A stretch of DNA of 63,333 bases, the filler included, from Perkinsus chesapeaki ATCC PRA-425 (Eukaryota > Protista > Perkinsozoa): the NCBI GenBank assembly GCA_013115145.1. It is 9 parts of 9 records of this genome, joined end to end, with 100 filler letters (N's around TTAATTAATTAA, not from the genome) between each part and the next. Parts side by side here need not be neighbours in the genome. Positions count along the whole stretch, not along the records: positions 39,267 to 47,563 come from JAAPAO010000983.1; 8 more parts are not named here. One strand, 5' to 3'. The translations under genes were made by a program, and so were the position numbers. Shown in pieces: positions 38,101 through 47,563 of the stretch; position 1 is the stretch's first letter; each line of letters starts with the position of its first letter. The notes beneath the pieces were generated by a model, which made no database searches, had not been told where the DNA came from, and saw only the letters and a program-made list of their open reading frames with translations.

Positions 38101-39627
38101 TTCCCTCAAGCTAAATGAGCCAGTATCGTGCCGACTTTGTCTCTTACTCGGTTATCCCAGTTCTGCCATTCCTCTCTGAAGTAACTACAGCCAAGTGGTG
38201 CCGACATGCAGCGACCAACTGCCCACCAGTAATCTCCTTGCTTTCGTGGGACCCTGGCCGGATGATGTGTACTGATGAGCTAGACATTTTAATCAACTAC
38301 TGAAATTATCTTTCTCTGGTCCTCGCGGGTAGCTGCAAGACCTTACGCATTTGGGTTGGTTTTGTCATCCCTTACGTTTTTCAAACGATATGCGATCGCA
38401 AGTTCGAGTCCAGGCTCGAGTTAAATCGATAAATTTCAATCAAAACCGATGCCCGTGGGAAGACAGTGCCAGTTTAGGTCCCGCAGTGGTTTCCTCTTAA
38501 ACGCAATACGACCAGATAATGATGGAAGCGACCCAGTAGCAACAGAGCAGGAATGAGCGATCAGTGATACACAGTGTGTCATGCAACGTATGCCGTAAAT
38601 GCGTGGGTGTTGTCGAAGAAGTTCGTATCGGCGAGGGTCACGATCTCCATTCCGCTGTGTTTATGGAGTACAGTCTCTACTAGTAACTTTTGGAACGACG
38701 CGAGTTCAGGCAATCTATAGCACCCACAAAGTGGTAAAATGTACCGAAGGCGTGCCTCCAAAGATCGAATTGGGGCTGTTCGGATTGACCGGATAGGTTA
38801 GTCCAGAGTTTTAGACGGTCATCGATCAAAAGAGCAACAGTGAAGAGTAGTATGCCCGAGGGCTCTTTCGTGAACCAACGAGTAAACCGGTGACCCGAGT
38901 AAATACTGAGAGTCGGCAATGGTTCCAGTTTGAAACGAAAGGTCAAATTCGGGTCAAATTATCTTTGTGGGAAAGCATTTGTTGATCGTTCCAACGAAAG
39001 CGGGTCGAACAGCTTATTAATATTTAATAACTAAACTAGGAAGAAGTGAAATACCGGCTGGTCCAGGGCAAAGTCTAACTTACCGGTGCCGTGCGGCATC
39101 GTCGCGCGCCGCCCGCAAAATCTCTGCGCGCGCCCTCAAAAACTCTTAATCCACCCTCAAATTTCTNNNNNNNNNNNNNNNNNNNNNNNNNNNNNNNNNN
39201 NNNNNNNNNNTTAATTAATTAANNNNNNNNNNNNNNNNNNNNNNNNNNNNNNNNNNNNNNNNNNNNCCGGTCCTTTCTCCCGGCAACCCCGTTATCAACG
39301 GGGGGGGTATCTTTTTTGCAAATCGTTGTTTCTTTTTACCCACTACTCTTTTAATCTTTTTAACCCCCCTCCCCCCCCCCCCCCCCAACCTGTCACCACT
39401 GCCGTCGTTCCTTCTATCGTATTGTGAAGTGTCGCAGCTCCCCCTTTGAGGCCGCTCTGTGCTCGGTTACTAACGACACTGTTGTTATTGCTCCATTGGG
39501 ATGTCATCATCATCATCACTACTGTACCACCATCAAGTATCTCGCTCACGTTTCAACAGTCATTTGGGGACAGTATATTGTGTTAGTCTTACTAAGGGAG
39601 TGGGTGGGTGATACAGGTGTTAAGATA

Positions 39628-40896
39628 ATGTCAGCAACACCTGAAGCACGAGAGGGTGGCCAAGCGGGCGAGGACCAGCAGCAGCAGCCATCCGGCGATA
39701 AAGACAGTTCAATGCTGCTGCCGGTAATAACACAAGGGTAAAGGAAAGCTGAGAGATATCACCAGCTCATCATCATTATCATAGTGCTTGCTGAGGTTTG
39801 GAATACGGGCTTGGCAGGTTCAGCGGGAGCCGCTTACTGGATATGAGGAGTTGGTCACTGAGGAGGACATTGTGGCCATGGAACGGGCACGAAGGGGGCT
39901 CAGACGCCCATCTTGGAAGCTACTCAACCCACCAAAGAAGAAGAAGCCTGTGGATGAGGGGAACGCAACAGTAGTATGTCTGGGAAGGGTCTCATTGTAG
40001 AGAAATATACAGCTCACGAGCAAGGACCGGTCAGCCTGGCCGATAGACAGTAGTCGTTCTATCCGCATGGGATGCCATGTTTGGGCTTATAGAAGCATCA
40101 GGTTCAACCGCGGCTGTCGCCGAGGAAATCCCGACGGTCCTCTCCCGACTATGCGGATCTGTTGCCGAGTGACGATGAAGATAACGATAGCGACGATGAC
40201 CGGGGACACCGTCGTCGCCGCCGGGGTCGGTCACGAGAGTTCACCACTGCCGACATCGGCAAGAAGGTCGGTCTTACTGAAAGTGTAACTGAAAATTGCA
40301 CTCCTCAGGACGTCAGCAGCCCTCGGTTGCGACCAAGGCTTGGGAGCCGAGATGAGATTACGCGGCGAAGAGGAGTCTCCCCGCGGGGAGATCTCAGGTA
40401 GTGCGGGGTGTTTCCGGACATGGTCCAGAAGCGTTGATTTTAGAGATGCGGACCGTCGTGGGGACTACTACCGCAGGCGGATGCCTCTTGAGCGTACCAG
40501 ATATGCCAGGGACCGATTTGAAGACCATTATAAGAAGTACACAACTGTAGAGGATCAGAGGAGAATTCAAGACAACAGGGTTGCCGGTATTAGTGATTTT
40601 TTGGCTTGGGCTAAAGATGCGAAAAAAGAGCCTCCTGAAGCCGGTAAGTAACATCAGCACTCATTCTTAGGATACATTCCTGTGGCACTCTCGTGTGGGT
40701 CACGTAGGCGTTTCCTGTTCCCTTGTTTTGGATTGCTATCGCTTGTGTAGGTCGTCCTCGAGCTCGGAAGGTGTTCCAGTCATTGTCGCCTTCACCAAAG
40801 AACCCTCGACATCGCTCCCGAAGTCGATCTCCTACCCGTGTCGAGTACGAGAAACGCAGCGGGCATCGCGGTGTGGCATTTGGTAGACGACGATAG
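39628..40896 (+). CDS. Arg/Ser-rich, acidic low-complexity nuclear-type protein (SR-related), multi-exon
   Basis: Exons encode LLNPPKKKKP (NLS-like), DDEDNDSDDD, RRRRRGRSR and a terminal SPSPKNPRHRSRSRSPTR...GRRR*. Confidence 0.55.
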
Positions 40897-41298
40897 CAGC
40901 TTCTGTTCTATGGCATTGTGTCGGCTAGGAGTGGGTAAATTGAACAATACAAATTACTCCTACGCTACTGTAAACATTAATGACATATGGTAGCTTTAAC
41001 CACTCAGAAGCACTCATACGCGAGACAATTGCGGAATACGTCCTGCGTGAGGAATATAATTTTACCTTTGTATGACAAGAAGCTAATTGATATTATTATC
41101 AACACAAAACCGTTGGTATATGATACCTTTCCTGGTTCCCAATCGAAAGCCAGTCATAGAAAACGAATCGTCCCGTGCGACTAGTACAGCACTTGATAGT
41201 GATGTGTAAAGAACTAACGGGCCAGAGTCGTCATTACCATGACCATACAGTAGGACCACATAGAAGGACCACAGAGAGCAAGCACAAGCAGCAGTAGC

Positions 41299-41846
41299 TT
41301 ACAACCTGCGACCACGGCGACCGCACTTCTTCCTGGTGGAATCGGTGGGGATGGGAGTAACATCCTCGATACGGCCGATCTTCATGCCAGCACGAGCGAG
41401 GGCACGGAGGGCAGCCTGGGCACCGGGGCCGGGGGTCTTAGTCTTGGTACCACCGGTGGCACGAAGCTTGATGTGAAGGGCGTTGACACCCAACTCCTGA
41501 AAAGGTACAAGGTTCGAATATCCAAGCTCGAAGCTTGAAAGATACGTGGGAGGTTTCAATCAAAGAACGTTTTACATCCCTCGAATACTACCTTGCACCT
41601 GACGGCGACATCCTGAGCGGCAAGCATAGCAGCGTAGGGGGAAGACTCATCACGATCAGCCTTCACCTTCATACCGCCGGTAACACGGACCAGAGTTTCG
41701 CGACCGGACACATCAGTGACGTGGATGAAGGTATCGTTGAAGGAGGCGTAGATATGAGCAACACCGAACACGAGCTCACCCTCGCGGACCTGAGGGCCGA
41801 GCTGGATAGGCTCTTCAACCTTAGCAGGGGCTTTCTTAGGGGCCAT
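41299..41846 (-). CDS. RPS14: 40S ribosomal protein S14 (uS11), 150 aa, two exons (41592-41846, 41299-41496)
   Basis: [20 protein letters not shown]...[16 protein letters not shown]...[24 protein letters not shown]...[23 protein letters not shown]; 95-nt GT-AG intron. Confidence 0.99.
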
Positions 41847-42117
41847 TAGGAAAAGTGGCTGGTACTAGTTCAAAGGTTTGGCCAGGCGCACACCAGGACG
41901 GGTTTAGCGTGATCGATTTCCGAAATCACTGAGGAGTCTCAAGATTCAGCAAGAGCGCAAGTCGACTTTTTATCACCTCGCTGATTTGGGCTCCAAACGC
42001 GCCCGTGCGTCACAGGGTATCTTGGAGTTTAATTGGCGACTTATTTGCTAAATACCAGTGCGAAAGGAGAGGGGAACGTGTATTGACTTGGGCAGTGAAG
42101 CCTTTACAGACTACGAT

Positions 42118-44079
42118 ATGTCCACAACAACTCAGACTACTAGTCCAGACTTTGCCTCAACACTACAGTTCTACTCCTCTTCGGCACCGCCTGCTCCATC
42201 CAATCAGGATAAGATGGTTAACTTGGGGAAACGGGCAGGTACCTGGGAAACCCGTTTTGTTAGCGATTACAGAAAAATGCATTTCCGCGCTCGAGGCAAC
42301 CGTATAAGGTAGCCGGAGGTCTTCCATGTTTGTTGACTTTTCCTGGAATCAACGTCCAAAAGGAATCTCTTCCACGCGGTATTAATAAGACTTGCTTCAC
42401 TGTGCAGGTCAGAGCATTCAGACTAACGCACCAGTTGTTCTCGGTGCCATATCGAGTGCTATTGCCGGAGCAATGAACACTGTGAAGGATGCAGCCTCAG
42501 GGGTTACTGGAGCATCAGGAGGCAGTTCCAAGACAGGAGCAGAAAGTCTAGATAGTACTAATTGGAATGGGGGACCTTTCAGTCGATGCGTCCTAACTCT
42601 TACTCCCCGTCAGCGGCTCAATAGTTGGTATTTACTATCGCCTCGGTATCTTTTTAGTAGTACTAGTTTATTCGCAGTAGCAGTTTCGCCTAATGCACAT
42701 TTGCTCCTTTATTACCCGTATATTTTCATCTGAAATTATGTCGCTTCGGGGGTTGTGCTGAACCCTGCGCGGGAGTTTGATCGTCACATTTATGTGATTG
42801 GAAATCATTGGCCGCCGGCGTCACTGAATTACATATATCGTAACGTTGTTATGTTTTAGCATTCGACTTGGAGCTAGGAAAGGTAGACACCACTCAGACG
42901 TCATCTGGCAGCAGTTCTGGATCCAACGCTCAAGGTAGTATCAACGCGACTGCTCAACAGGCGGAGCACCATTTAACATACTGTATTAATGCCCTCTATC
43001 CATCCCGGCACGAATGGAGATAATCTTTAGAGCATACGGCTGGCTTAATACTTGATACGCTTCAGGTGGGAATGGCGAGAATACTAGTTTGATCGCCCAG
43101 TGGACGAGCTCAGCGGTCCAATCCGGCACCCAGGCTTTCCAGGGCATGAAGCAGCAGGCGTCGGTACGTAAATAAAAGTTTAGGGACGGCGGTTTGTAAA
43201 TGTTGTTATCAGGATATCGCATCGACTAGAGACACTATAGGAAAGTTTATCATGTTCTTCGCTGGTGGATGCATCTGTATGATGTTGGCATTGACCTTCC
43301 TTCCAATGGTAGTACTAACAGAACGGCTAGTGCCTGTGAACGGTCATCTGAGATCTCGCTTAGTTATTTTCCCTGTGTTGTTTTCACCGTTGTTTCTCTC
43401 CTCTCAATTACAGTGTGAACCGAAACCTTAAACGAACTTCTTTTTAATCAATAAACATCCAGCTCTGAATATCAGCGGACTTACACTGAAGTTTTAATAA
43501 AGAATTTCGATCAGAAAGAGTTTGAGGTAGATGAGAATTATGTCGCTTAGAATAATCAGCAGTAGTGTGTTTACTTTACGGACGCACCGGCCATATATAC
43601 TACTGTCAGGTTGTAATAGCACCACAGAAGTTTGCTCTCATGTTCACCATTGGCAGCTGCTTAATTCTAATGAGCTTCTCTGTATTGAAGGTAAACTCTC
43701 CTTATCTCCAAATCGCCATTAATATCTCCCTTTAAGGGCCATGCTGCATTCATAGCGCACATAATGTCACCAGAGAAGCGTCTCTTCACGGCTGGGTATG
43801 CAGCGTCCTTGGTGGCAACGCTGTATGCCGCCCTAGTGAGCAAGTCTTACCTACTCACATTGGTTTTCTCACTTATCCAAGTAGTGGCTTTGGCGTACTT
43901 CCTAGTCAGCTACATTCCAGGAGGTAGCACCGGTGGGTATTCAATTAACTCGGAGCTTGTCATCAGGTACGAGGGCTTTGACGATGATTGGTAGCGTAGC
44001 GGTATCGACTGTGAAGAACCTCTTCTCTGGCGGCGGGTCCTCGTCGAGCTCGCAGCAGTCCAGCGGCCTGCCGCTATAG
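42118..44079 (+). CDS. SFT2: SFT2/Got1-family tetraspan vesicle transport protein
   Basis: FIMFFAGGCICMMLALTFLPM-VIAPQKFALMFTIGSCLILMSF-GHAAFIAHIMSPEKRLFTAGYAASLVATLYAALVSKSYLLTLVFSLIQVVALAYFLVSYIPGG; stop TAG at 44077-44079. Confidence 0.88.
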
Positions 44080-44345
44080 AAGGGAGTTTTAGTAGGTTTT
44101 TGATAATGATAAAATAATGTACATTCTTCGCCGAGGAGGCCTCTGCTGTCACCACTTTTCCTGTCGTTTCCTGCCGTCTGTTGGTGCGAAGTAGCAGGGG
44201 CGTTGGTGCTGGCAGAGACCATCGAGTAGCTCTGATGCCACCGAACAAAAGCTGTATAAATAAACGCGCTTACTCTACGGGGAGAAATGTGACATGTGTT
44301 GTCAATTAATGGGCGCAGCGGTCAAGGGTGGTATCAGTTGCTTAT

Positions 44346-47300
44346 ATGGCGGACATAGCTTCGTTGCTCGAGGCCATTGAACGGTCTCAGTCCGAAATCC
44401 AAAGCGTTAAAGGGAGAATCGCGAATGTCGCAGGTAGTACGGTTGAATGGGAGGGTATATCAATGCCAACGGATCTTGCGGCTTCTCTTGACGAATCCTG
44501 TGCGGAGAGGTACTGCTGGGCTGTATGTGGAAGTGGCAAGAACTATAGCACCTTCTCACCATGTTTCTGAATAACCCACTATTCTCTTGAGCCCCCGTTA
44601 GGAAATAGCCGGTATGTCGATCGTAACCATACCTGATGCGGCGGAGACTGGTGGTGTTGTCTAGGTAAGCTGAATCAAGTACGTATGGCTGTGGCCACAT
44701 CATCGGGGCCGGCATCGGCTATGAGAGATGTCGGGACTAGTAAACTTAAAGAGGAAATAACGAAGGCAAGAGACGGCATTAAACAGTAGCTGATCTCAGT
44801 GGGAGTGGGATTAAAGCAAAGTGGGCCTCTTAGATTTAAGAACATGATCAAGGATGCGGCCGAAGCGGCGGCTGCTGAGGAGCAGACCACTATGGGCTTC
44901 GGGGCGCTCAAGAAACGTATGGCTCATGATGACAAGACGAAATCACTGTACTGCTGGGGTAGGCAGGAGTTGTCTGTGTATGGTGTGGCAGGTATGAGAG
45001 GATCGGCGGAGATCTTTCCCTAGAAACTGCTGTTGAGATGGCATATAACAAAGCCTTGCAGGACGCGAGAACCCGGTAGGATATTTCCTATCATTGTGCA
45101 CCATTCAATGGTAGAGCTTACTTTGAGAAAAACCAGCGGAAAATGGCCAGTATTCGACAGAAGATGCATCAGGTGGATCTTATACAGCCTCTATGCGATA
45201 GAAAAGGTTTTGCCAGTTTCTCTCTGGTCTGCTGGGCGGCCCTGTTTTGTATGACGAGGACAATTTGAAGCCGGCGCATTATCACATGAACATCACAGAC
45301 TATCATTTCGATGCGGTAAGTATTGGTCGAGGATCTCTCCAAAATGGGATCGTACGGAAACGTGTTAGGTTGTGGAGCATTTTCAAGGAGCCTTCGAGGA
45401 GCTGGGTGTCCACCCGAATGCCGTCTTAGACGCCGCAGCGGCGTTGGGCACTGTAATAGCGGCGTAGTAACTTGGGGGAAGAAGGTGGGGAGCGGTCAGG
45501 CCCGTAGAGAGATCACTACAGGATGTACTGTACGTATGGAAGTTGCTAGAAGGAACACAGAAAAGGGGAAGGATATATTATATAGGAAAGTTGGCGGTAA
45601 CGAGGGGCATGCTGCGGTGTTTTTATGGCAATAGGTTGTTAATGCAAATGCTACATACTCGATATTCATTTGCCTTTCAGAGACAGAAGGAGTGGTGAAA
45701 TTTATGGAACGATTGTACGATCTCATTTCCATCGACACTAGAATCAAGAAATTCTTCCAAGGGAGAGATGTGAATAAGTAACATAATACTGTCGCCGCTT
45801 CAGCTTATCGATAAATAGGATTAGAAAGAGCCAGACGGTCTTCATCAGCGAGCTTCTAGGGGGTGAGAAGCAGTACCAAGGTAAGCCGTTATGGCGAAGT
45901 GGTGTGGATGAGAGTTCGTTGAGCAGGTCGGTCCATGCCTGATATTCACAAAGGCATGAACATCGATGACTATTATTTCGACTGTTTCCTGATGAACGCG
46001 GAGAAAGCTCTGTCGGGATTGGGCGTCGACGATGAGACTATAGACGAGGTGAGTGCAGCTTTTCTATTAGAGTCAATGGGCTCTACACAGGTGCTCGTGA
46101 CCTTGGAGCCACTTAGAGCAGATGTGCTTAACCGAAAGCGAGGAATACAAGCTTCTCACAAACTGGTTGATGGTAAATCGGTGCTTGAACGTGTGGGAGG
46201 AGAAATGAATATGGAGTCTTTGGTGGAGACAATGTAGTGTTGTTGCCGATGAACTGCCTAGACGTTTATCGGCTGTGTGATAGGTATTCCGGGTGTCTCG
46301 CTGATCCTCGGGTGAAATATTACTTCGCATTGGAGCCAGCTAGAATGACTAATCTCAAGTCTAAGATGGTAGGGCTGCTATTGAGAGGTGCTGGGCTGAT
46401 AGAGGGTTTGCTGACAGGCACAGGTTATAGTTGGTATCAGCGGGGGGCCATCAGTATATGATTTGAAACGATTGAGGCCGATTCATTACCATATGAATAT
46501 AACAGATTATCACTTCGACTCTATGTTGGAGAATCTGAGGGTGAGTTGGAAAGCGTTGTTGAACTCAAATGGGCAAAGATGTGTGGCCGGTATAAGTTCC
46601 GATTACCACCGTACGGCGGTATGCAGAATATCAGAGCAATAGTAGTCGATAATGTACTATACAAGTGTGCGTTAGGTTGCCTGCGAGATGACCGAGTTGG
46701 CTCCAGAGCTCATCCGTGATGTTGTGGAAGTGGCAGCCTCTGTGAGATCGGACATCACGGCTGGATGCACAGTGCGTCTGGAGATTGCACGGAAGAAGAC
46801 TGAAAGCGCGGGTACTAGACTTGGAGAGCGCTAGTTTCAGTCAGACTGGGATACCCTTCGAAGTCTCTCTACTGGTATGCAATGGGATCTTGTTATTTAG
46901 GAACGGATGGCCTGTTTGCTGTCCTTGGCGGTGACGAGGGTGTTATGAAGTTCATGGATAAGCTGTACGAGTCAGTGCTCCAGGATGATAGAATTCAGCA
47001 TTTTTTTTCGGGTGCCAAGCTTGACTCTGTGAAGAAAAGCCAAGGTAGGCTCTCACCAGATAGTCAGTGTGGCGTTGATACGTTATATCGTATTTCCCGA
47101 GTAGTTGAGCGATTGTATCCTCTTCAGCCGAATATGTAGCACAACTGTTTGGGTCCAGTCGAGAGTACATGGGCAGAGAACTACCTCGCATTCATGCAAT
47201 GATCAGAATTGCGGATTATCATTTCGACTGTTTTATCGAGCAATGCAGGAAGAACCTGACTAACTTGGGATTGGACTCAGACTCGGTTGACGAATGTAAG

Positions 47301-47447
47301 TGTTGTGGTATTCAATTCTGCGCTCGCCTACTGTATGCAACAAGTCCATTCACTGTTGTAAATGAGGTAGCGCAGCTCGTTAACCCGCCAGGGGATCGTG
47401 CAATGGCTAAAGCTCAAGGAGGTTTAGCTAGTGTGATTTCAATTTGA
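44346..47447 (+). CDS. Multidomain group-1 truncated (2/2) globin: N-terminal coiled coil plus four tandem trHb domains; 3' end uncertain
   Basis: Manual splicing gives four domains, each with L(Y)xRxGG, Tyr B10, Phe CD1, a GG(P)xxY EF motif, proximal His F8 and DY(H/Y)FD: D1 ~44940-45455, D2 ~45570-46110, D3 ~46175-46770, D4 ~46905-47300. Confidence 0.9.
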
Positions 47448-47522
47448 TGGTATCAACTCTCCTGCCCTGGGAAACTCCAGTCCAATTTTCCCGGATTTTT
47501 ATGTTTTTCGGAATATTCTCAA

Positions 47523-47563
47523 GCCGGTTTAGCTTAGTGGTAGAGCGTCAGTCTTGTAAACTG
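47523..47563 (+). tRNA. tRNA-Thr(TGT), 3'-truncated by the contig end
   Basis: GCCGGTT-TA-GCTT-AGTGGTA-GAGC-G-TCAGT-CTTGTAA-ACTG, then the N gap. Confidence 0.85.

Follow-up and report, generated by a model that had tools for sequence, protein, structure and literature searches.

An eight-domain truncated haemoglobin gene, probably split between two Perkinsus chesapeaki contigs, with two alternating haem-pocket types

The 63,333-nucleotide stretch of Perkinsus chesapeaki ATCC PRA-425 DNA analysed here (the window; nine parts of assembly GCA_013115145.1 joined end to end) carries at 44346-47447 a gene which a preliminary description had read as a four-domain truncated globin of (AB)2 architecture, and the question raised by this locus is whether the gene ends within the part that holds it. 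The piece concerned, 39267-47563, is a whole contig of 8,297 nt (JAAPAO010000983.1). The evidence presented below indicates that a single eight-domain gene very probably extends across this contig and a second one, JAAPAO010000404.1. The window would then hold the 5' half of a gene for a group-I truncated (2/2) haemoglobin of roughly 1,140 residues, laid out as a two-helix N-terminal extension of about 100 amino acids followed by the domains A1-B1-A2-B2-A3-B3-A4-B4. Exons 1-17 would supply the extension, A1, B1, A2 and all of B2 through its G helix; the B2 H helix, along with A3 to B4, would be located on JAAPAO010000404.1. The overall explanation, which combines the eight-domain gene with a tRNA-bearing intron, two haem-pocket types and an AB module, is considered likely.

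On the + strand, a continuous 17-exon GT-AG model with zero in-frame stops was obtained over 44346-47295, with introns of 39-231 nt, most of them 39-55 nt. The deposited P. chesapeaki protein of the locus (KAF4651942.1, "hypothetical protein FOL47_011343"; P0002) contains all 17 exon peptides letter for letter, and these encode the helical N-terminal extension of about 100 residues followed by four group-I 2/2 globin domains (D1 to D4), the last of which is incomplete. Whole-protein analyses were performed on deposited proteins (P0002, P0174, P0194), while the window DNA was searched exon by exon. Exons were mapped onto P0002 by exact substring; the exons are short, and tblastn of P0002 on the piece recovered 3 of the 17. 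The proteins compared were P0174 (FOL47_007051, P. chesapeaki, flagged partial), P0194 (FOL46_006286, P. olseni), P0172 (Pmar_PMAR008889, P. marinus), P0196 and P0213 (Oxyrrhis marina MMETSP0469 transcripts) and P0173 (A0A7S4GMC9, Oxyrrhis marina), and the additional loci were contig JAAPAO010000404.1 (L003), a P. marinus scaffold (L002) and a P. olseni contig (L004).

In the window D4, which belongs to class B2, stops at the end of the G helix. No globin H helix was found when every reading of 47296-47447 was scored against the family profile (-1.6 to -2.3 bits), compared with +6 to +19 bits on the same profile for the H-helix exons of D1-D3. An H helix for D4 inside the window was sought via acceptor 47371, via donor 47300 combined with acceptor 47345, and via read-through to 47447; each candidate gave a negative profile score and was rejected. 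The last exon of the deposited P0002 model, 47367-47386 (ending in "SAAR"), is unsupported and false. Sequence 3' of the exon 17 donor showed no conservation with P. marinus or P. olseni, and position 47447, which had been taken as the end of the gene, falls within the start of an intron (47296-47563). P0172 of P. marinus is 84% identical to P0002, but this similarity ends entirely at the same residue, past "VDEC". The order on the P. marinus scaffold is last globin exon, tRNA-Thr(UGU), assembly gap, second half of A4 and full B4, and this B4 carries the usual C-terminus of the family.

The second P. chesapeaki contig provides what D4 lacks. P0174 opens with a B2-type H helix and continues with A3-B3-A4-B4, and its contig, from the same assembly as the window contig, starts at base 1 with tRNA-Thr(UGU). 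The first 41 nt of JAAPAO010000404.1 are the last 41 nt of the window piece (47523-47563). Exon 17 ends on one nucleotide (T) of a split Cys codon; this T and the GC which follows the acceptor on the next contig together make a Cys codon, and orthologs have Cys at that position. The P. olseni protein P0194, 86% identical to P0002 and 81% to P0174, spans the junction on a single 109-kb contig which holds all eight domains. Gene order agrees with this arrangement: ribosomal protein S11 (-) and a Got1/Sft2-like gene (+) lie upstream both in the window and in P. olseni, with S11 (-) upstream in P. marinus too, and the downstream neighbour is PIH1 (+), both on JAAPAO010000404.1 and in P. olseni.

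Three observations weigh against a single gene. The P. olseni model FOL46_006286 also wrongly fuses the upstream Sft2 gene, so its predictor over-joins; the contig overlap falls inside a multi-copy tRNA gene and alone is no proof of adjacency; and the joining of the two halves in P. chesapeaki is deduced from genomic sequence rather than transcripts. As the predictor was shown to over-join, independent evidence for one gene was sought. The H-helix exon comprises 33 codons, in which 26 nt differ between P. chesapeaki and P. olseni, distributed 3/1/22 by codon position and producing 18 synonymous and 4 non-synonymous codon changes, while the flanking intron cannot be aligned between the two species. 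This substitution pattern, together with the unalignable intron, indicates that the exon is translated in that frame. For exon 17 the corresponding differences are 5/4/31. The H-helix exon begins at an acceptor with no upstream ATG and must therefore be spliced to upstream coding exons.

The exons and other features of the window piece are as follows.

Exon 1, 44346..44433, + strand: start codon and N-terminal extension; GT donor, peptide equal to P0002 1-29.
Exon 2, 44665..44785, + strand: N-terminal extension; peptide match to P0002.
Exon 3, 44834..44947, + strand: end of the N-terminal extension and start of A1; peptide match to P0002.
Exon 4, 44992..45075, + strand: A1 A-B helices with Tyr B10; P0002 match and domain alignment.
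Exon 5, 45115..45172, + strand: A1 CD-E region with Lys E10/Met E11; P0002 match and domain alignment.
Exon 6, 45217..45315, + strand: A1 EF-F-G with the His F8 codon at 45277-45279; Bac_globin E 0.01 for the exon alone.
Exon 7, 45369..45452, + strand: A1 G-H helices; P0002 match and H-helix profile score.
Exon 8, 45500..45596, + strand: helical A1-to-B1 linker and start of B1; helix 218-237 in the AlphaFold2 (AF2) model.
Exon 9, 45681..45777, + strand: B1 A-B-C with Tyr B10; P0002 match and domain alignment.
Exon 10, 45819..45880, + strand: B1 E helix with Gln E11; P0002 match and domain alignment.
Exon 11, 45927..46048, + strand: B1 F-G with the His F8 codon at 45947-45949 and Phe G8; P0002 match and domain alignment.
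Exon 12, 46091..46233, + strand: B1 H helix, flexible B1-to-A2 linker and start of A2; P0002 match, model and profile score.
Exon 13, 46284..46368, + strand: A2 B-E with Lys E10/Met E11; P0002 match and domain alignment.
Exon 14, 46418..46540, + strand: A2 E-F-G with the His F8 codon at 46484-46486; acceptor as in the deposited model.
Exon 15, 46676..46811, + strand: A2 G-H helices and helical A2-to-B2 linker; P0002 match and profile score.
Exon 16, 46901..47044, + strand: B2 A-E helices with Tyr B10 and Gln E11; Bac_globin E 7.7e-4 for the exon alone.
Exon 17, 47128..47295, + strand: B2 E-F-G with the His F8 codon at 47193-47195, last coding exon in the window; P0002 match.
Start of the intron that splits B2, 47296..47563, + strand: donor GTAAGT, running to the contig end and including 47367-47386 and position 47447.
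Copy of a 47-nt repeat, 47447..47493, + strand: upstream of the tRNA; 43/47 identical to L003 89-135, which follows the tRNA on the next contig.
tRNA-Thr(UGU), first 41 nt, 47523..47563, + strand: truncated at the contig end; matches bases 1-41 of JAAPAO010000404.1 exactly.
Ribosomal protein S11 (uS11/RPS14) exon, 41559-41846, - strand: upstream neighbour.
Got1/Sft2-like gene, 43764-43991, + strand: upstream neighbour.

For exon 14 the acceptor at 46418 was preferred to one at 46424; it adds "AQ" and gives the length seen in the P. olseni ortholog and in the Oxyrrhis transcripts.

The intron which follows exon 17 and splits B2 contains a sense-strand tRNA-Thr(UGU) in all three Perkinsus species, at these positions outside the window.

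Intronic tRNA-Thr(UGU), P. chesapeaki next contig, L003 1-72.
Intronic tRNA-Thr(UGU), P. marinus, L002 7745-7818.
Intronic tRNA array, P. olseni, L004 6953-8733.

In P. olseni the junction intron is about 2.15 kb in length, with a 172-nt tandem array of nine tRNA genes on the sense strand, of which eight are Thr-UGU and one was scored Ser-UGA. The recurrence of the 47-nt segment on the far side of the P. chesapeaki tRNA fits a repeat unit like that of P. olseni. ARAGORN did not call the cut tRNA in the window, and it was recognized only via the neighbouring contig. The tRNA repeat accounts for the breaks at this point in the two independent assemblies of P. chesapeaki and P. marinus. A further tRNA-like sequence at L002 7590-7660, about 155 nt upstream of the intronic tRNA-Thr of P. 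marinus and uncalled by ARAGORN, could be a degenerate copy of that unit.

Two other accounts of the locus were weighed against this evidence. The gene might truly end in the window, yielding a genuine four-domain (AB)2 protein with a short species-specific tail in place of the last H helix and leaving A3-B4 as a separate gene, and it can be said for this account that the deposited P. chesapeaki (613 aa) and P. marinus (632 aa) models both stop shortly past "VDEC", that a tRNA gene lies within 230-365 nt downstream, and that a transcript-derived Oxyrrhis protein of 625 aa has the N-terminal extension and four domains. However, the species have unrelated tails past "VDEC", none of which scores as globin; a 2/2 globin lacking its H helix misses half of one helical layer; and the missing helix is found right past the tRNA on the neighbouring contig, in matching phase and in an exon that lacks its own start codon and whose substitutions by codon position show purifying selection. 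The Oxyrrhis four-domain protein, for its part, has a complete last domain and a canonical C-terminus. We therefore regard a gene end within the window as very unlikely. The tRNA array could instead separate two units, the 3' half being expressed alone, for example by spliced-leader trans-splicing at the acceptor with a start at the Met before A3. Perkinsus does use spliced-leader trans-splicing (PMC3101222), such a Met is present just upstream of A3 in the H-helix exon, and RNA polymerase III genes in a 2-kb intron could hinder read-through by RNA polymerase II. Set against these points, the 27 codons before the Met show a synonymous excess like that of true coding exons, the 5' half would be left with a B2 that is incomplete despite 90% conservation with P. 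marinus, and all paralogs as well as the Oxyrrhis transcripts are contiguous eight-domain open reading frames (ORFs), so that two separate products appear distinctly improbable. With a single eight-domain gene strongly favoured, the small remainder is shared between the truncated four-domain product and the separately expressed halves, and the four-domain (AB)2 protein of the preliminary description would be a consequence of the contig end cutting a gene that most probably goes on to (AB)4 on JAAPAO010000404.1.

The domain content described for the window itself was confirmed. Scanning of P0002 against Pfam gave Bac_globin (PF01152) in four stretches with an E-value of 1.4e-55 and a score of 187 bits (cut-off 21). 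Exons scanned singly gave weak Bac_globin E-values (exon 6, 0.01; exon 14, 0.006; exon 16, 7.7e-4; exon 17, 0.09), with zero matches for the D2 (B1) exons; such scans are too weak for counting domains, and the count was taken from the deposited P0002. His F8 is kept in all four domains, and the pairing of D1 with D3 and of D2 with D4 was likewise borne out, A1-A2 being 42% and B1-B2 40% identical versus 22-27% between A and B.

The AF2 model of P0002 has a mean predicted local distance difference test (pLDDT) score of 83.4 and a predicted template modelling (pTM) score of 0.74, and that of the eight-domain ortholog has values of 82.1 and 0.66, with the B2 H helix at about pLDDT 90. In Foldseek comparisons the P0002 domains matched 3AQ5, 1IDR and 1DLW with target template modelling scores of 0.85-0.94 and root-mean-square deviations of 0.8-1.0 A. 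All top sequence and fold matches belong to group I, group II matches are far weaker, and G8 is not Trp. The 2-on-2 fold of B2 is complete only when the exon of the next contig is included. Gly-Gly hinges at the AB and EF corners are both present in A1 and A2, while the AB corner of B1 reads G-E and the EF corner of B2 reads G-S. The A-to-B connection is a long helix in both AF2 models, whose confidence is lowest in the B-to-A connections (pLDDT below 50 at 358-363 and 894-898, and about 72-76 at 621-640). The N-terminal residues, approximately 100 in number, form two long helices of lower AF2 confidence. This extension is conserved in relatives, being 37% identical to that of the Oxyrrhis marina proteins (E 6e-18); no signal peptide was seen at the N-terminus on direct reading, the extension not being hydrophobic, and a protein atlas search with the extension gave zero matches. 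The conserved N-terminal helical hairpin may serve in self-association.

Within its family the architecture is an ordinary one. A profile made from the F-G regions of D1 to D4 was searched against 1.84 billion representative proteins. This gave 442 matches at E <= 1e-3, nearly all with 2-12 matched stretches, and with a locally built family hidden Markov model P. olseni proteins were found to reach 16 domains. In domain trees the Perkinsus-type domains form two clades of 23 rows each, with a Shimodaira-Hasegawa-like approximate likelihood ratio (SH-aLRT) support of 100; one clade holds the odd-numbered (A) and the other the even-numbered (B) domains, and the order within proteins is strictly ABAB. 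P0002 domains group by position with the domains of other proteins and not with their partner in the same protein. A sister relationship was rejected by the approximately unbiased (AU) test for D1+D3 (p 0.0004) and for D2+D4 (p 0.003); the grouping tested was that of the preliminary description, and a quick tree had been seen before the test. Of the proposal that a two-domain unit was duplicated, the part that stands is AB as the repeating module, as judged from sequence comparison. The duplication is not specific to this gene, its domains having positional orthologs elsewhere. Eight positional classes, A1 B1 A2 B2 A3 B3 A4 B4, were distinguished, of which P0002 has A1, B1, A2 and B2 and P0174 has A3, B3, A4 and B4. 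Shared intron positions were tried and rejected as a sign of recent internal duplication: between D1 and D3, and between D2 and D4, most introns lie 2-6 codons apart, the one at the G/H boundary alone coming close to a common position. The offsets fit an old duplication and suggest intron turnover since the domain duplications.

The canonical protein consists of the N-terminal extension and eight domains in 1,154-1,190 aa, a layout present in P. chesapeaki paralogs and in complete Oxyrrhis marina MMETSP0469 ORFs, which are transcripts. In P. chesapeaki the family has expanded to at least seven loci. A search of related proteomes for the same architecture, as had been proposed, showed the extension and the A1..B4 order in P. 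olseni, P. marinus and Oxyrrhis alike. P0173, the Oxyrrhis protein of four domains mentioned above, matches the first half of the eight-domain P0196 at 81% identity; either a true short form or the collapse of a transcript assembly could account for it. An environmental contig (L001; JGI sample 3300012716, 1736 nt) carries an uninterrupted 535-aa A3-B3-A4-B4 globin ORF, which is either cDNA-like or from an intron-poor relative. Outside the Perkinsus A and B clades are a 13-domain diplonemid protein (P0013, Lacrimia lanifica transcriptome) and the metagenomic proteins P0018, P0022 and P0025, which have 4-7 near-identical repeats, one of them with a signal-peptide-like N-terminus. Tandem multiplication of this globin seems to have occurred several times, these cases appearing to be independent.

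Helix numbering of the haem pockets was anchored on the truncated haemoglobin (trHb) of Tetrahymena pyriformis, with Y25 as B10, Q46 as E7 and Q50 as E11, using the titles of the PDB mutants Y25F, Q46E and Q50E together with alignments. All eight domains have His F8, Tyr B10 and Phe CD1. In the gene's four A domains E10 is Lys and E11 is Met, and A domains have Tyr F9; in its four B domains E11 is Gln, E10 a small residue and G8 Phe. Across the 136 domains of the family, His F8 is present in 132, Lys E10 and Met E11 in 46 and 48 of the 61 A domains respectively, and Gln E11 and Phe G8 in 60 and 57 of the 75 B domains. Given these residues, haem binding by the domains of the gene is highly probable, and the retained pocket residues together with the 2/2 globin models lead to the expectation that there should be one haem b per domain, eight per chain.

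The best solved relatives of both domain types are the Tetrahymena pyriformis trHb (3AQ5) and Mycobacterium tuberculosis HbN (1IDR), with E-values of 6e-20 to 8e-19 and of about 1e-12 to 1e-15. His F8, Tyr B10 and Phe CD1 are common to these proteins and the Perkinsus domains, as is Gln E11 in the B domains. However, 3AQ5 and 1IDR are single-domain proteins of about 120-136 aa, whereas the Perkinsus chain has eight domains and an N-terminal helical extension; the Gln46 at E7 of Tetrahymena trHb is replaced by hydrophobic residues, the Phe E15 gate is missing, and the A domains carry Met E11 and Lys E10. In Chlamydomonas reinhardtii THB1 (4XDI, 6CII), also a eukaryotic group-I trHb, a lysine at E10 ligates the iron (PMC11904497), and this lysine is matched by Lys E10 in all four A domains of the P. 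chesapeaki gene. THB1 is a single-domain protein of modest similarity (E 5e-11), and we infer lysine coordination in the A domains by analogy only. Among family members, P0194 (86% identity) and P0172 (84%) are orthologs of P0002, and Oxyrrhis P0196 and P0213 are co-family members with 53-55% identity and transcripts of about 1155 aa; all share the extension and the A1..B4 order, and P0194, P0172 and the Oxyrrhis proteins are annotated only as "hypothetical" or uncharacterised. Of the two orthologous models, that of P. marinus breaks off at the assembly gap in the intron that splits B2, and that of P. olseni is the one fused to Sft2. Polymeric invertebrate globins such as the nine-domain haemoglobin of Artemia also have many covalently linked globin domains per chain, but these are extracellular O2 carriers with the 3-on-3 fold and no alternation of two pocket types. 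The multi-unit T1 globins of protists known from sequence analysis (Hade et al. 2017, IUBMB Life 69:479, as summarised in PMC7475203) likewise, in that summary, place tandem group-I 2/2 units in one polypeptide. The multi-domain truncated haemoglobin as such is already known from sequence surveys. Our literature search found no open paper on Perkinsus or Oxyrrhis globins, and the A/B alternation, the eight positional classes common to Perkinsus and Oxyrrhis and the tRNA-bearing intron may or may not already be in print.

With respect to function, Tyr B10 combined with polar E7/E11 residues gives a high O2 affinity suited to enzymatic chemistry (PMC11904497, PMC4720485), and the B domains, with Tyr B10, Gln E11 and Phe G8, may be O2-avid ligand-binding sites of the nitric oxide (NO) dioxygenase type. 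An E10 side chain can ligate haem iron, as His does in GlbN and Lys in THB1, and the resulting six-coordinate haem favours electron transfer (PMC11904497). With Lys E10, Met E11 and Tyr F9, the A domains could become endogenously six-coordinate in the manner of THB1, a state which would favour electron transfer here too. The modelled A-to-B connection is a continuous helix and that from B to the next A is flexible, so the AB pair is probably the working module, in which B would carry out ligand chemistry (O2 binding, possibly NO dioxygenation) and A might act as a redox partner. This A/B division of labour is tentative, somewhere between improbable and conceivable. Judged by pocket residues, an NO-dioxygenase function would suit B domains, with their Tyr B10/Gln E11 pair, more than A domains, with Lys E10/Met E11. 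In the most elaborate form of the idea, six-coordinate His F8/Lys E10 A domains would act as electron relays which re-reduce the neighbouring Tyr B10/Gln E11 B haems after NO dioxygenation, the rigid AB pairs would be catalytic modules, four per chain, the hairpin would assemble larger particles, and the design would date from the perkinsid-dinoflagellate common ancestor; as a side point, the gene would tolerate a sense-strand tRNA-Thr array transcribed by RNA polymerase III inside an intron splitting a globin domain. All of this being true together is improbable.

Two features of the pockets speak against the NO-dioxygenase assignment. E7 is hydrophobic (Ile/Val/Leu) in all domains. At E15, where M. 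tuberculosis HbN has its Phe gate, B1 and B2 have Ile or Val and family B domains mostly Ile or Leu, so that kinetics may differ from those of characterised NO dioxygenases. With the gene structure unchanged, a serious alternative to NO dioxygenation or a redox relay is a protein that mainly stores, buffers or scavenges O2 for a facultatively micro-aerobic cell, in the manner of polymeric invertebrate globins. The many haems per chain and several paralogs per genome fit this role, as do the presence of the family in free-living Oxyrrhis as well as in parasites and the hydrophobic E7. On the other hand, Tyr B10/Gln E11 pockets usually release O2 very slowly, which suits chemistry over delivery (PMC11904497, PMC4720485), and strict alternation of two conserved pocket types is left unexplained by storage alone. 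O2 storage as the main role is accordingly possible but on the unlikely side.

Three public Perkinsus models of this gene are each wrong in a different manner: one by truncation at a contig end, one by an assembly-gap cut and one by fusion to Sft2. The true product would be an eight-haem protein. Truncated haemoglobins have nearly always been studied as single domains needing an external reductase, and a conserved chain of alternating pocket types offers a testable model in which ligand chemistry and electron transfer may be divided between domains. The preliminary description had further proposed that the protein could help a parasite facing NO from host haemocytes. Since free-living Oxyrrhis marina has proteins of N-terminal extension plus (AB)4 as complete transcripts, this parasite-versus-haemocyte rationale is not needed, and the sharing of the family with Oxyrrhis points to an ancestral myzozoan trait and not to a parasite-specific NO defence.

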